In this document: positions 15,346 to 24,124 of the stretch, one piece after another | Position numbering within the stretch: position 1 is the first letter of the stretch | Layout: each line of letters begins with the position of its first letter | Origin: Paramoeba atlantica | Lineage: Eukaryota > Protista > Discosea | DNA: 43,680 bases | NCBI GenBank assembly: GCA_977017575.1 | Contig: CDRNVI010000031.1 | Location: forward strand, 1-43,680 | Direction: 5' to 3' | The notes under the pieces: model-generated | Database searches by the model: none | Seen by the model: the letters and a program-made list of their open reading frames with translations, nothing else | Told to the model about the DNA's origin: nothing | Position numbers and translations under genes: made by a program

Positions 15346-16161
15346 TACAGGTTTACCTCGGAATGAAGAAACGCTAGGATTGGTCGCTCTGAAACGAGCC
15401 AAGCAATTAGCTCTTAGTCATCAGTATCTGTGCCTCGAAGCATTTCTTGTCTCCTATACCAGGGCTCGATACTAGCCGAGCGGCGCTTATGTTTTTCTTG
15501 CCTATCATCACATCACAGTAAGGTACAATCATTTACTCTTCTGCCATAACATCATACATTGTGTATGGCATTACACATCATTACCTACATGGTATCATAC
15601 ATTTGGTATAGCATACATACATTGGTAGCGCATCATACAGTAGTACAAACAGTAGTATACTGTACATACTGTAGCGTATCTGTAGTATACTGTATAGTAG
15701 TCAACATGTGCCAACGAGGCTATCCAATGCTGGTCGTGTATCGCATGGTGATGGACACGATCCCGTGAGGATACCCCTACGACCATTGATGCTCTCCGTC
15801 TAAGTGCTGGTCGTAATCTGTAAACTACATGTGATCCATAATTCTTGTCTCTTATTCCAGAGCTCGATCCTGCGCCTTGTCGTGGCGCTCTGGCTTAACA
15901 CCCGCAAGAGTTAACCAAGACATGTAGAAACACATTTGAACATTTGAAACACATTTGAAAAATGTGTAATGGGGTAATAAGGGAAATAAAATTGAAATAA
16001 ATCGCAACAAAATCTGCGCCGCTTCGCGGCTCCTGTTTTCTCCTACTGACAAATAAGTAGGCGGTGTAAAATTACTACCTTCTCTGAGAACTGACAAATA
16101 AGTAGTGCTTTGTCTTAGTAGGCAGAGCAGTACCTTGAACTAGCACTTGTACTTTAACACC

Positions 16162-16605
16162 ATGCAACGTGTCGTACGCGCGGTTGATGTCCCCTCTCGA
16201 CCCAGTAAGGTACGAAACGCGGTCCTCCCACAAGAATACAATATGTTTCGACTACTGAGTAACGCCAGTTTCGCTGAGGAGTCATGGACCGAGAAAACGC
16301 CTGCTTGTGTGTGGAAGCATGTGGAGTGTAACGATGAGGGAGAAGTGACAAAGACACAATGGACCAGATACGAAAGGGTATACGTGTATATACAGGAAGA
16401 GAAGAGAGTCTCTCTAAAAGGTGCACTGCGATTGATTTTCCTACCCGACACATTGACCTCCTTCGATGCTTCCTTGCAAGAGGTTTTGGAGGGGCACGTA
16501 GACTTGGCGGTTCTACCGGCAGGATTGAAAACGTTTGACATTCGTTCGAATCAGTTCAGCGGAGGTTTGGATTTAACCCATTTGCCGTCTACTCTGGAAG
16601 ATTTT
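16162..16605 (+). pseudogene. LRR subfamily A copy 1, 5' part (interrupted)
   Basis: High identity to intact 20349-21065 up to ...LPSTLEDF, then replaced by the SL-headed insert. Confidence 0.9.
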
Positions 16606-16609
16606 CTTT

Positions 16610-16641
16610 AACGATAAAGATACAGTTTCTGTACCTTGTTG
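16610..16641 (+). other. Spliced-leader exon copy AACGATAAAGATACAGTTTCTGTACCTTGTTG followed by GT
   Basis: Shares the ACAGTTTCTGTAC core, the TTG end and the AACG 5' block with the trypanosomatid SL AACTAACGCTATTATTAGAACAGTTTCTGTACTATATTG. Confidence 0.85.
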
Positions 16642-17427
16642 GTACATTTTGCTAGCCCTTCCTTTCTTTTCCCGGAAACGGGCATATTCTTACTTTTAAA
16701 TGCCCGTTTCCGGCTGACGGCTAGCTGGAACTGTTCCTCTTTGTCGCGGAAGTAGGGGACGCACTTCGCACTCTTCACCCCTCCCCGGCTCGCTCTCTTC
16801 GAGTGAGCTTTCTTCCCTCCCCGGCTCTCTCCTTCTCGTGCTTTCTTCTCCCGGGAGCTATGGCCTCCCTTGAGGACCACTGGGCGTGCTACAGCGGGAG
16901 GACACGTTGTATGCGTGTATAGGGGATGCGAACTTGCACCCCTCTCTCCCTACATGCTGTAGCGAGTGCGGCGGTAACGGACCTCCCCATGATGCATCAT
17001 GATCCACGATAGACCATCTGACAGCATGAACCCACGGCTTGACCGTGTTGCAGCATGAACCATGGCTATACGTGCTGTAGCATGACCGATGGTCACGGTG
17101 GCCTCCCTTGAGGACCACTAGGCGTGTCCTCCGCCGACGAGACTCCCGGCTCTCCGCACCTGGGGGTCGCCCAGCTCTCTGCACCCCGGCTCTGTCGCAG
17201 CTCTCTGCACCCGGATTGCCCCCGAAACTGTAATATGGGGATTACGCATCCGGCTCTCTGCACCTGCACATGACAACCGAGCTCTCTGCACCTGAGACCC
17301 CAGCTCTCTGCACCCGCACACCTCCGGCGAGGGCGAACCCTCACTTGATCCACCCGTCGCATGCGGGCACGGACTTTGTGAGCATAATCTCTGCACTATA
17401 AGTGCATGAACGAACAATGTGCATTGA
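16610..17427 (+). mobile_element. SL-headed non-coding SINE-like unit 1
   Basis: SL, nested hairpins (16650-16725), pyrimidine tract, 28-bp direct repeat (16861 and 17099), about 7 CTCT(C/G)CAC-type motifs, and 3' hairpin TGCACT-ATA-AGTGCA. Confidence 0.7.
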
Positions 17428-18007
17428 AAAGATGCAGTTTCTGTACCTTGTTGGTACTTTTTCCTTAGTTAATCCTTTCTTTCCCCGGCAACGGGCATAC
17501 TCTTACTGTATTTTTATGCCCGTTGCCGGCCGGCACTAAGGTCGGAACTCTCCCTCTTGTCGCTGAAGCAGGGGACGCGCTTTCACCCCTTCACCCCTCC
17601 CCGACTCACTCTCCTGGAGTGAGTGTGCTTCCCCCTCTCGGCTTTTATCGACTCGTCTTTTTCCTCTCCGAGAGGGCCATGCGTCACGGTGGCCTCCCTT
17701 GAGGACCACTAGGCGTGTCCGCCGCCGACGAGACTCGGTTCTCCGCACCTGGGGGTCGCCCAGCTCTCTGCACCTCGGCTCTGTCGCAGCTCTCTGCACC
17801 CGGATTGCCCCCGAAACTGTAATATGGGGATTACGCATCCGGCTCTCTGCACCTGCACATGACAACCGAGCTCTCTGCACCTGGGACGCCAGCTCTCCGC
17901 ACCCGCACACCTCCGGCGAGGACGAAACCTCACATGATCCACCCGTCGTATGCGGGATAAGGACATGGTGAGTAAATCTCTGCACTATAAGTGCATGATA
18001 AAACACA
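17428..18007 (+). mobile_element. SL-headed non-coding SINE-like unit 2
   Basis: Starts AAAGATGCAGTTTCTGTACCTTGTTG|GTAC. Homologous to unit 1 but lacks its 210-bp internal segment; same 3' hairpin at 17981-17995. Confidence 0.7.
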
Positions 18008-18210
18008 CCTTGGTCACAATAGTCTGTGCGGAAAACCTGATCTCACCAAGCTCCCGGAAGAGCTAACATGGGCCATGCTCCTTCACAACCTTTTCGTCAT
18101 ACCTGACTTTATTCCGGAAGGTGTTCGCATCAAGCCATATGTGAGAAAATAGCATCCACCCTGTAGATATAACCCATGCAGTCTGAAGAACCGACGTAAA
18201 AACATTTTTA
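18008..18210 (+). pseudogene. LRR subfamily A copy 1, 3' part
   Basis: ACCTTGGTCACAATAGTC...AAAAACATTTTTA aligns to 20857-21060. About 71 bp of LRR sequence is missing at the insertion site. Confidence 0.9.
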
Positions 18211-20040: not shown

Positions 20041-20348
20041 TATATAGTACGACGCATGCATAGTACGACGCATGCATGTGTGTGAAATATGGTTTCTCAC
20101 TCAAGGTTGAGAAACCCCACATTGCACGCCAAACAAAGCACGGTACAAGTTGTTTACCACGTGAACTGCATGTAACAAAATGATTTTTAAATCCAAATCA
20201 CGTGCAAAGAGGTTTTAGATTTTAAGAGTAGTATTTATCTCAATAATGTGCAATAGGGTAATAAGCAAAATAAAAGGGTTAGGCGATGATAGTACTTTAT
20301 CTTAGTAGGCAGAGCAGTACTTTGAACTAACACTCGCACTTCAACACC

Positions 20349-21065
20349 ATGCAACGTGCCGTGCGCGCGGTTGATGTCCCCTCTCGACCCAGTAAGGTAC
20401 GAAACGCGGTTCTCCCACAAGAATACAATATGTTTCGACTACTGAGTAACGCCAGTTTCGCTGAGGAGTCATGGACCGAGAAAACGCCCGCTTGTGTGTG
20501 GAAGCATGTGGAGTGTAACGATGAGGGAGAGGTGACAAAGATACAATGGCGCAAATACTTAAGCGCATATACAAAGGAAGAGGAGAGAGTCTCTCTAAAA
20601 GGTTCACTGCGATGGAATTTCCTACCCGACACATTGATCTCCGTCGATGTTTCCTTGCAGGAGGTTTTGGAGGGGCATGTAGACTTGGCGGTACTACCAG
20701 CAGGACTGAAAAAGTTTGACATTCGTACGAATCAGTTCAGCGGAGGTTTGGACTTAACGCATTTGCCGTCTACTCTGGAAGATTTGAGTTTGGGATCCAA
20801 TCGTTTTGAAGGTGAAATTGACCTTACACGCCTCCCCGATACTTTGAAAAGGCTCGACCTTGGTCATAATAGTCTTCGCGGAAAACCTGATCTCACCAAG
20901 CTCCCGGAAGCGCTAACATGGGCCATGCTCCTTCACAACCTTTTCGTCATACCTGACTTTATTCCGGAAGGTGTTCACATCGAGCCATATGTGAGAAAGA
21001 AACATCCACCCTGTGGATATAACCCGTACAGTCTGAAGAACCGACATAAAAACATTTTTAAATAA
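20349..21065 (+). CDS. Leucine-rich repeat protein, subfamily A (intact, 238 aa)
   Basis: N-cap W...CVWKHVEC followed by 23-aa LxxLxLxxNxFxGxxDLTxLP repeats. Confidence 0.9.
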   Translation: MQRAVRAVDVPSRPSKVRNAVLPQEYNMFRLLSNASFAEESWTEKTPACVWKHVECNDEGEVTKIQWRKYLSAYTKEEERVSLKGSLRWNFLPDTLISVDVSLQEVLEGHVDLAVLPAGLKKFDIRTNQFSGGLDLTHLPSTLEDLSLGSNRFEGEIDLTRLPDTLKRLDLGHNSLRGKPDLTKLPEALTWAMLLHNLFVIPDFIPEGVHIEPYVRKKHPPCGYNPYSLKNRHKNIFK

Positions 21066-22785: not shown

Positions 22786-23174
22786 ATGCAACGTGCCGTA
22801 CGCGTGGCCGATGTCCCCTCTCGACCCGGTAAGGTGCGAAACGCAGTTCTCCCACAAGAATACAATATGTTTCGACTACTGAGTAACGCCAGTTTCGCTG
22901 AGGAATCATGGACCGAGAAAACGCCTGCTTGTGTGTGGAAGCATGTGGAGTGTAACAATGAGGGAGAGGTGACAAAGATACAATGGACCAGATACGAAAG
23001 AGTATACGTGTGTGTACAGGAAGAGGAGAGAGTCTCTCTAAAAGGTTCACTGCGATGGAATTTCCTGCCCGATACGTTGATCTCCTTCGATGCTTCCTTG
23101 CAAGAGGTTTTGGAGGGGCACGTAGACTTGGCGGTTCTACCGGCAGGATTGAAAAAGTTTGATATTCGTTCGAA
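22786..23174 (+). pseudogene. LRR subfamily A copy 3, 3'-truncated by a transposon
   Basis: Matches A1 and A2 to KFDIRS, then switches to TA|CTCTATACCCCCC. The ORF tail to 23298 is non-LRR read-through. Confidence 0.88.
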
Positions 23175-24124
23175 ACATACTCTATACCCCCCTATACCTT
23201 CCCCCTGGAACCCCCGGGATCCCCCACCCGGGTCCAGCGAACTCCATAGCCGAAAAAACGCCAAGTACTGTATGCCATTGGTTTCTTTTGGGACCTGACT
23301 GGGTTTGCCTCGGTTTGCATTTTACTGGTTTCAGTCCTCTTAGATATACAATTTCTTTTCAGTGGGAATTTGCTACACCTGTTGCTTCGTATCTCCCTCG
23401 CCCCTTTAAGCCTGGGTTCTATAAACCCACGAAACGTGATCAGCTGGCCACCCGCTGAAAAAATGGCCAACTCGTCACCCCCTGAAAAAGTTGCCTGCTG
23501 ATCATCCCCTGAAAACGTGGCCGGCTGACCATCCCCTTAAAAAAGTGGCCAACTCACCACCCGCTGAGAAAGTGGCCAGCTGGCCATTTTTTCACGGGGT
23601 TGTCAGTTGGCCATAAAAAATAGTACTTCTTTTTCGTTCATTCGTTATGGCCCCGGCCACTGAAGCACGTTTTGAAGAACCAAATAGTTCGCGAACTTAG
23701 TTTAGGAGCTGAAAAAGATTCCCCAAATTTTGAAACAGTTGTAGTTTATGAAATTGGGGATGATAATGAATCGTCTTTGCGATTTTTTATTCCACGCCCG
23801 CACACTTGAGCGTTCCGCACACTTGAGCGAGCCGCGTTCCGAGTCACGATTTTAGTAAACAGGTTCTAAAAACTGCGTACTCACTACGGGGATAGTGAGT
23901 ACTCACTACTCACTGAGACTGGGTAGTGATACTCCTAGCATGGGGATTATGAAAAAAAAAATATTGCAGCTGTGATTTAATCTTAAGATTTTCTTTAGTT
24001 TCTATTAGCACTGTTTCGGAAATGATTAAGAAGGCAATACGTCTCTTCTGAGGCAAATTAACCCAGTATCTTCTCAACAAGAACGTAAGCGCATTCACAC
24101 CTCTCACCCCACTCCTTACCACAC

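Follow-up and report, generated by a model that had tools for sequence, protein, structure and literature searches.

A probable tail-to-head train of spliced-leader-headed retroposons in a leucine-rich repeat gene of the Paramoeba atlantica assembly

What kind of element carries a copy of the spliced leader (SL) at its 5' end and comes to lie, without an open reading frame (ORF) of its own, inside a protein-coding gene? This question is raised by a 43,680-nt stretch of the Paramoeba atlantica assembly (GenBank GCA_977017575.1, contig CDRNVI010000031.1, positions 1 to 43,680 of the forward strand; hereafter the window), in which a 1.4-kb insert interrupts a leucine-rich repeat (LRR) gene, LRR-A1. 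A first-pass annotation, made from the letters of the window alone, had described the insert as a head-to-tail dimer of an SL-headed, ORF-less element resembling a short interspersed nuclear element (SINE). We arrive at a related, yet different, reading: with a probability of roughly three in four, the insert consists of SL-headed, non-coding retroposons lined up tail to head in one canonical LRR target site. Contigs (C) and loci (L) other than the window are referred to by our own numbers.

The insert runs from 16605/16606, four bases to the left of the start at 16610 that had been annotated, to about 18006/18007, and LRR sequence resumes at 18008 (Table 1). Its SL head contributes an in-frame TAA that closes the LRR-A1 reading frame. 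The intact paralogue LRR-A2 (20349-21065, 238 aa) aligns to LRR-A1 up to 16604 and again from 18008; the stretch lost from LRR-A1, first reported as about 71 bp, amounts to 72 bp, which is exactly one 24-codon LRR unit. Among the read-derived contig sets that hold the locus we found neither an empty allele nor a presence/absence polymorphism; a joint of 16604 to 18007 in a read set, with 71 letters between, is the LRR-A2-type paralogue and not an empty allele.

Two SL-headed units do stand in line in the insert, as the dimer description held, but the upstream one is not a second copy of the downstream one. Unit 2 (17428-18006, ~580 bp) is a full copy of a family that we call A. Unit 1 (~820 bp) is a chimera, in which positions 1-488 of a family C (16605-17092) are joined at 17092/17093 to the 3' 325 nt of A2, a subfamily of A; this latter stretch (17093-17417) shares 99% identity with C64:46470-46796 and 94% with unit 2. 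The C/A2 junction lies 7 nt past an internal GCATGA, which is the spacing of a normal tail, and the 10-nt filler that follows unit 1, TGTGCATTGA, is probably an abortive or slipped product of reverse transcriptase (RT). Several details of the first-pass annotation were borne out, namely the direct repeat (now 16616-16653 and 17428-17465, 92% identity over 38 nt), the roughly seven motifs per unit (seven CTC[TC]GCAC in each, ~0.05 being expected by chance), the common 3' hairpin, both units closing in ATCTCTGCACTATAAGTGCATGA (17387-17409 and 17976-17998), and the GT after both SL copies. The exact C/A2 chimera has a second instance on contig C56 only (L002); because the 99% identity extends through 3.6 kb with flanks, that copy is either allelic or the result of a very recent duplication. 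It is devoid of 26 bp between two CTCTGCACC motifs (window 17261-17292). Seven of the nine mismatches between the two 3.6-kb copies fall inside the insert, and the CTCTGCACC motif array may be liable to slippage or to conversion with other copies.

Families A and C are young and dispersed, and SL-headed trains and families are not unique to the window. With unit 2 as query, the near-full copies of family A that were scored number at least 40, spread over more than 25 contigs and 90-99% identical (383 candidates at first look; ~100 genome-wide candidates for its 3' 103 nt), with a median terminal branch length of 0.002 in the tree of its copies. Family C comprises at least 38 copies with 93-98% identity to insert positions 1-488, the complete ones extending ~130 nt further, to ..GCGTATGATCATAACC or ..GTATCTCTGCGCCACGAGCGTATGATCATAACC (L038:1313-1930). 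Together with A2 and a further family, B, they have a common 5' module of ~320 nt (75-85% identity), in which SL, GTAC, a pyrimidine-rich stretch, a 14-15-bp hairpin and conserved blocks up to GGCCTCCCTTGAGGACCACTGGGCGTG follow one another. The hairpin contains one compensated pair, A:T to C:G, between C and A/B; folding of the module gives z-scores of -5.8 and -8.1 against shuffles, and the predicted fold would bring SL nt 28-32 into pairing with G38 and the GUAC after it, as in stem-loop I of SL RNAs. The central regions diverge, A and A2 holding six internal GCTCTCTGCACC and C three ..CAGCATGAAC.., while the 3' end has the same build in every family: (A/T)ATCTCTG leads into a hairpin with a 5-bp stem, behind which come (C/T)ATGA and a short fixed tail of 6-13 nt. 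A genome-wide count of the pattern ATCTCTGCRC-N3-9-GYGCATGA gave 173 occurrences, compared to 0 for a control.

Individual copies end sharply at the 3' side and raggedly at the 5' side within the SL, where starts range from nt 3 to 23 with a mode of 10-13. The five spurious ORFs in the insert had no match in Pfam, ARAGORN detected no tRNA in it, and Rfam, searched with the whole window at gathering thresholds and with 16500-18100 at E up to 5, returned no HDV-like (hepatitis delta virus) or hammerhead ribozyme, tRNA, 7SL or 5S. The ORF-less, SINE-like and SL-headed nature proposed in the first pass is thereby upheld, and the genome-wide search of unit 2 did yield dispersed copies: the elements are dispersed, non-coding, multi-copy families with a fixed 3' end and variable 5' truncation, like SINE-type retroposons. 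Their head is the SL, and not an RNA polymerase III promoter of tRNA, 7SL or 5S descent as in SINEs proper.

To describe where these elements land, we defined the target distance in LRR-gene insertions as the number of nt between the 'LP' motif, counted from the first base of its Leu codon, and the element's first base, allowing for stacked SL remnants. It is 22-26 nt in 13 of ~14 LRR insertions, comprising SINEs A, B and C as well as a long interspersed nuclear element (LINE) that we call X, and all insertions so measured are in sense orientation; the head of a second type, LINE Y, at L066 also comes after such a motif (..KLPLRLEH). On the other side, 8-14 nt separate the element's tail from the next N-x-(L/F)-x-G, and the left and right distances add up to ~36 nt, the intact LRR spacing, to within ~3 nt, so these are clean insertions without visible duplication; a target-site duplication was visible in none of the LRR insertions measured. 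The target is the LRR coding repeat and not the SL: the flanks are LRR coding DNA or the tails of other elements, as opposed to an SL gene parted between nt 11 and 12, the site of the CRE clade. In the window, the insertion point lies 24 nt past the first base of the Leu codon in 'LP' and ~10 nt remain on the right, and since it fits the rule on both sides, the missing 72 bp are exactly one period. This deficit may be an older difference in repeat number, or it may stem from two strand breaks at equivalent points of neighbouring units. A third LRR paralogue (22786-23298) loses its similarity to LRR-A1 and LRR-A2 after ..FDIRS, at ~23177; this is not the canonical insertion point, and a different kind of disruption is likely there.

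The two LINEs are candidate partners for the SINE families. LINE X (L063, L064) begins with SL and AATTATTTTC, and its RT matches RVT_1 (1.6e-34) and, best among solved structures, R2Bm (8gh6, 1.7e-30); a C-terminal motif of a restriction-like endonuclease (RLE) reads ..RPDGWV..IELTCPWEEN..EKY, and the element ends in AATCTCTGTAGAATATTT[C/T]CTACATGATAACATAT(AT)n. Seven copies have the exact 3' motif, one of which adjoins a 1585-aa open frame on C54. LINE Y (L065) begins with SL and TTTTTTTTCTC, carries an RT, CPICN..H..C and RPDGYIKL..IELTVPWEEN, and ends, in one copy, in ..CAATCCCGTTGAATGCGGGTCAT..ACTCTACTGGAAAGTATGAAAAAATAAAAAC. The succession of RT, CCHC finger and PD-(D/E)XK-like endonuclease motif (RPDG..E..K) is that of R2/RLE-type LINEs, and both elements are likely R2/CRE-like. 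LINE Y resembles SINEs A and C in having a CCCGT..ATGCGGG hairpin, an end of the CTCT-hairpin-ATGA type and AAAAC at the close of its tail. CTCT and ATGA on either side of the 3' stem are invariant across families A, B/C and the two LINEs. Between them the stem varies in its inner pairs, with CAC/GTG for A, CGC/GCG for B as well as C, TAG/CTA for LINE X, and ACT/AGT for LINE Y; paired substitutions of this kind between fixed flanks indicate compensatory change in a 3' recognition hairpin.

The SINEs thus have a 3' end in common with two putatively autonomous LINEs of the same genome, and judging from these sequence features they would be mobilised in trans by LINE X/LINE Y-type elements. The idea of a non-autonomous partner of an SL-specific retrotransposon, put forward in the first pass, is retained insofar as an autonomous partner of R2/CRE (RLE) type is likely, but not with regard to SL-specificity, since the families land in LRR repeats. 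In stringent LINE/SINE pairs such as UnaL2/UnaSINE1, the SINE likewise borrows the LINE's 3' stem-loop for recognition by the RT; those pairs differ from the present families in their tRNA-derived, polymerase III-type heads and in a partner with an apurinic/apyrimidinic-type endonuclease (APE). At L066:2389-6450 (C20), the 5' two-thirds of a LINE run into a premature stop (..EKLWI*) and, 5 nt on, into a complete B SINE, a fusion that may represent a LINE using a SINE 3' end or a plain jump product.

Tail-to-head joins such as that in the window occur at ~1/5 of the loci sampled, in various combinations of SINEs and, in one case, behind LINE X (Table 1). The outer flanks of the four-member train at L009 are one canonical LRR site (23 nt left, ~10 nt right), and the train in the window likewise occupies a single one (d5 24 nt, d3 ~10 nt). 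At the tail-to-head junctions the downstream SL begins anywhere from nt 10 to 18, and the downstream members at L009 have no SL, so that the SL does not serve as a landing pad. These joins are most likely the product of template jumping: both the trains and the C/A2 chimera would arise when the RT jumps from the end of one RNA to another during a single integration event, which in the window would have proceeded from A to the 3' part of A2 and then to C, entered at an internal GCATGA resembling a 3' end. Template jumping by the R2 RT is established in vitro. In this model, families A, A2, B and C would be copied in trans by R2/CRE-like LINEs that have a restriction-like endonuclease and the same kind of 3' end, and which would nick the LRR coding DNA ~24 nt past the 'LP' Leu codon and start reverse transcription from that nick; the RNA templates would be the source of the SL heads, ragged 5' ends would be incomplete cDNAs, and the SINE RNA would consist of a capped full SL, then GUAC, and end at ..CAUGAUAAAAC.

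The SL itself can be read from bona fide genes, which give AACTTTAACGATAAAGATACAGTTTCTGTACCTTGTTG, 38 nt in length (AACTTTAACG...CCTTGTTG), with ..GGTAAAGCCCTTGTT as the promoter context directly before SL nt 1. These genes form arrays with a ~2.56-kb period on contigs C97 and C107, and also on C11, C74, C3 and C24, with a 5S rRNA gene ~390 bp upstream of the SL gene on the opposite strand, and every one of them continues after the SL with GTATGAGAAG (GTATGAGAAGCTTCGAAC..). In the units of the window the SL is followed by GTAC[A/T]TTTT, which has only GTA in common with the true intron, and when the 110 nt behind the SL are aligned locally to this intron the score is 13-14, compared to 14 ± 2 for shuffles. 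Their heads begin at nt 3 and nt 13, and neither a 2.56-kb tandem unit nor a 5S gene accompanies them. The 38-nt SL sequence had no match in the searchable literature, and metagenome scans returned 0 matches for the SL-GTAC junction and one contig for the SL alone, a true SL gene (L067, Ga0316204_10168667). On this contig (L067:1-400), which is so from the same species or a relative, the SL exon and the intron start are identical (GTATGAGAAGCTTCGAACC), and tRNA-like B-box sequences lie upstream.

Two further observations concern the 5S-linked arrays. In the SL/5S repeat spacer, on the minus strand at L039:1403-1560 (C11), an antisense, 5'-truncated B-type SINE ending in ATCTCTGCGCCAATGAGCGTATGATAAAG sits beside a long (GA)n run in each repeat, and its presence at the same place in each of them indicates that SINEs also entered the SL array spacer and were then homogenised. 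Contigs C137-C182 (L031-L036) hold a different type of 5S in extreme purine/pyrimidine low-complexity DNA, unlike the kinetoplastid 5S by the SL gene; the 5S search that reached them offered no route to an SL array there, and they may represent a second organism or an unusual compartment in the assembly.

The heads bear on how the elements acquire their SL. All five heads that start from SL nt 3 (the window and four others) read T-CTTTAACG, with T where the gene has A at position 2, probably a misreading of modified cap-proximal bases. Five of the 24 SL-headed A copies are short forms without the 13-15 nt just after the SL: L023, L027 and L028 (sampled), as well as L043 (read from its 30-nt junction context), pass from SL to TT[A/C]ATCC and are devoid of exactly GTACTTTTTCCTTAG, while L026 passes from SL to AGTTAATCC and misses only the first 13 nt of it. 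As loss of 15 nt is the outcome expected of a fresh trans-splice onto the AG of GTACTTTTTCCTTAG, the short forms mark re-trans-splicing. They occur in both A sublineages (TTA and TTC) as scattered tips of a weakly resolved tree of A copies; this tree is too shallow to show independent origins of the short forms, which only the different junction types demonstrate. At L020, ..CCTTGTTG is joined to TTTCTGTACC.., a fresh SL having been spliced onto the AG within the remnant of an older one, and stacked SL remnants are also present at L038 and L047. We infer that the SL heads derive from leader-bearing RNA templates and not from the target. Further SL-headed elements behind poly(A) tails, at L041 (C1:146000-148200) and L042 (C5:123500-125300), have heads that reach SL nt 3 (T-CTTTAACG), unlike the LRR-homing elements, which mostly start at SL nt 10-13; one head of this group consists of SL nt 3-16, TTAAAAA and SL nt 3-38, which would fit the interposed copying of a very short, polyadenylated piece of SL.

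The SL-GTAC junction is more difficult to account for. It is found in all four SINE families, whereas the other SL-headed elements inspected are without GT there, and ~234 SL+GTA sites were counted in the genome. A genome search for an acceptor source, AG directly before GTAC[A/T]TTTT.., gave 0 matches. A search for a full SL+GTAC master at up to 2 mismatches gave only true SL genes (GTAT) and retrocopies among the copies inspected, with two further near-full candidates at C19:444036 and C69:310678. Candidate routes to this head are a trans-spliced master, masters driven by the SL promoter, and RT template switching onto SL-bearing RNAs.

How else could two SL-headed units have come to lie in a row? 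The first-pass annotation suggested that unit 1 may have inserted into the SL that heads unit 2, which would call for an SL-specific endonuclease of the SLACS/CRE type. That the partner LINEs are R2/CRE-like would suit such an event, as would the many heads beginning at about SL nt 10-13, in the vicinity of the nt 11/12 site of SLACS/CZAR (PMC12278014); yet the SL fragment is on the wrong side, being the 5' head of the downstream element and not one half of a split target. Starts at nt 10-13 are also seen in single copies, directly against LRR DNA, the true SL arrays at L037, L039 and L040 show no insertion at nt 11/12, and given the fixed LRR target, the variable starts of downstream SLs and train members wholly without SL, we regard this scenario as very unlikely. 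The main rival to template jumping is a stepwise origin, in which A integrated first, later elements were re-inserted before the resident copy at the intact upstream half-site, and unit 1 resulted from a ~390-bp DNA deletion between adjacent C and A2 elements. Pairs of a C and a following A2-type copy do exist, one on C64 and another on C69, the latter with a short B fragment in between, and a deletion between such neighbours would yield unit 1; first-strand cleavage by R2 depends on protein bound upstream of the site, as is well established, and abutment with 0-3 nt between pieces fits re-insertion as well as jumping. Trains at ~1/5 of the sampled loci are, however, a high fraction for repeated strikes on sites already taken, inner members have often lost much of their 5' end and are still joined precisely, and the C/A2 junction, 7 nt past GCATGA, resembles an RT entry point more than a random deletion end. 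A stepwise origin is therefore possible, though in our view rather unlikely.

The SL heads invite two more explanations. That the units are a displaced, decayed pair of SL RNA gene repeats, the alternative offered in the first pass, had only the SL exon followed by GT to recommend it, and we give it virtually no credence: the units do not match the main SL array in length, content or post-SL sequence, the true repeats being 2.56 kb long with a divergent 5S and the intron GTATGAGAAG, their alignment to this intron equals that of shuffles, and they belong to dispersed families with ends of their own. The other explanation takes the head for a relic or mimic of an SL RNA gene, such that master copies situated behind an SL exon would be transcribed from the SL promoter into an RNA starting with the capped SL and the 5' splice site GTA. 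SLACS and CZAR are indeed transcribed from the SL promoter, and the partner LINEs here are R2/CRE-like. The restriction of SL-GTAC to the four SINE families among the SL-headed elements inspected, the predicted capacity of GTAC(A) to keep and strengthen stem-loop I of the SL RNA, and the absence of an AG-GTAC acceptor source from the assembly are all in line with such masters, and short forms appearing as scattered tips would be expected if masters alone replicate. Conversely, no full SL+GTAC copy at up to 2 mismatches was found beyond retrocopies, similarity to the true intron ends at GTA, and T5 runs right after the SL would hinder an SL-type transcript, so that we hold this explanation to be improbable. 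It is similarly doubtful that the families constitute a new class of SINEs derived from the SL RNA gene, with SL-promoter masters or leader renewal by RT template switching, and with a head that is no by-product of trans-splicing; if true, the host's universal mRNA cap donor would have been co-opted as a SINE head.

Several points weigh against our interpretation of the insert as a retroposon train. Neither an AG-GTAC source nor a full SL+GTAC copy from which the SL-GTAC head could be renewed was found in the assembly. There is no RNA support: the probable RNA run X5 contains SL-mRNA contigs, with SL and LRR flanks covered, and nothing from the SINE body, which is no proof of silence, so transcription is neither supported nor excluded. 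The classic hallmark of target-primed reverse transcription, a target-site duplication, is missing, although its absence is typical of R2-like elements. The 72-bp gap relative to LRR-A2 may predate the insertion, and without an empty allele the insertion mechanics rest on the comparison of paralogues. On the side of the partners, the copies of LINE X with the exact 3' motif are few, and the 3' end of LINE Y comes from a single copy.

Table 1. Features of the insert and its host gene in the window, followed by family tails and trains.
Feature	Position	Strand	Description
LRR-A1 5' part	16147..16604	+	ORF from 16147; stops after ..LPSTLED(F); 91% identity to LRR-A2 20290-20785
Unit 1 SL head	16605..16641	+	T, then SL nt 3-38 (16606-16641)
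Family C body to its position 488	16642..17092	+	GTAC, hairpin 1 (16672-16685 / 16700-16713), three ..GCATGA(A/C)C reiterations; ends GCATGACCGATGG
A-subfamily A2, 3' 325 nt (from ~position 264)	17093..17417	+	six internal CTC[TC]GCAC, terminal motif 17387-17409, tail ACGAACAA
10-nt filler TGTGCATTGA	17418..17427	+	near-copy of terminal GTGCATGA
Unit 2 SL head	17428..17453	+	SL nt 13-38, one substitution (A19G)
GTACTTTTTCCTTAG	17454..17468	+	pyrimidine tract plus AG acceptor
Family A body and 3' end	17469..18007	+	hairpin 1 (17485-17499 / 17515-17529), six internal CTC[TC]GCAC, terminal ATCTCTG-TGCAC/GTGCA-CATGA (17976-17998), tail TAAAAC(ACA)
LRR-A1 3' part	18008..18150	+	picks up at ..LGHNSLCGKPDLTKLP.. 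in canonical LRR phase
72-bp LRR unit of LRR-A2 without counterpart in LRR-A1	20786..20857	+	from alignment of paralogues
Family A tail			TAAAAC
Family A2 tail			ACGAACAA
Family B tail			ACATCA
Family C tail			TCATAACC
Train, window			A2 tail, then A
Train, L013			C, then A
Train, L016			B, then A
Train, L038			B, then C
Train, L064			LINE X, then B
Train, L046			B, then another element
Four-member train, L009			A, then C from position 135, B from 389, A2 from 32; 0-3 nt between pieces

The nearest analogues of these families are the short internally deleted elements (SIDEs) of R2 (PMC3414825) and the SL-tagged retrogenes of dinoflagellates (PMC5585692). Like the families described here, the R2 SIDEs of Drosophila are short, non-coding partners of a site-specific, RLE-type LINE that rely on its 3' RNA recognition, have no poly(A) tail and need to have their 5' end freed from a host co-transcript, and the R2 RT is known to jump between templates (PMC3414825, PMC3774820). 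They are, however, internal deletions of R2 with an HDV-like ribozyme at the 5' end and 28S rDNA as target, whereas the present families combine bodies unrelated to the LINEs except for the 3' end, a host SL head and a protein-coding LRR target; Rfam returned no ribozyme for them, and their 5' module is absent from the LINE heads. Dinoflagellate retrogenes with relict SLs (PMC5585692, PMC12014239) resemble them in that a DNA-encoded 5' SL marks a retroposed, leader-bearing RNA and stacked relicts record repeated rounds, as at L020, L038 and L047, but those are processed host mRNAs and not replicating families whose 3' end serves recognition and whose target is fixed. Among kinetoplastid elements, SLACS, CZAR, CRE1 and CRE2 (PMC12278014, PMC4728078) are likewise RLE-type non-LTR (non-long-terminal-repeat) elements tied to the SL sequence, yet they split SL RNA genes at nt 11/12 and have poly(A) tails and target-site duplications, while in the present families the SL forms the 5' head of the element itself, the target is an LRR, insertions are clean and the tail is short and fixed. 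RIME, NARTc and SIDER, derived from ingi/L1Tc (PMC3185411, PMC4035085), are also non-autonomous kinetoplastid retroposons mobilised by a LINE, but with a Pr77 or HDV-like ribozyme head, a poly(A) tail and an APE-type partner, traits of which the present families show none. The literature on the kinetoplastid mobilome lists ingi, CRE/SLACS, VIPER and TATE, and in a limited search of it we came across no mention of SL-headed or LRR-targeting elements (PMC12278014, PMC4728078).

The kinds of element combined here, a site-specific RLE-type LINE with a dependent SINE on the one hand and SL-tagged retroposition on the other, are thus already known. Site-specific retrotransposons usually reside in rDNA, SL genes, tRNA genes or telomeres. 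A guild of LINEs and SINEs that homes to a codon-level position of LRRs would act as a mutator built into a large family of surface or adhesion genes, truncating genes, as is the case for LRR-A1, and possibly adding or removing 72-bp repeat units. The SL head would be a third route to a defined retroelement 5' end in a polycistronic genome, beside internal promoters and HDV-like ribozymes, and the trains, chimeras and short forms would be natural records of RT template jumping and repeated trans-splicing, testable in a free-living kinetoplastid.

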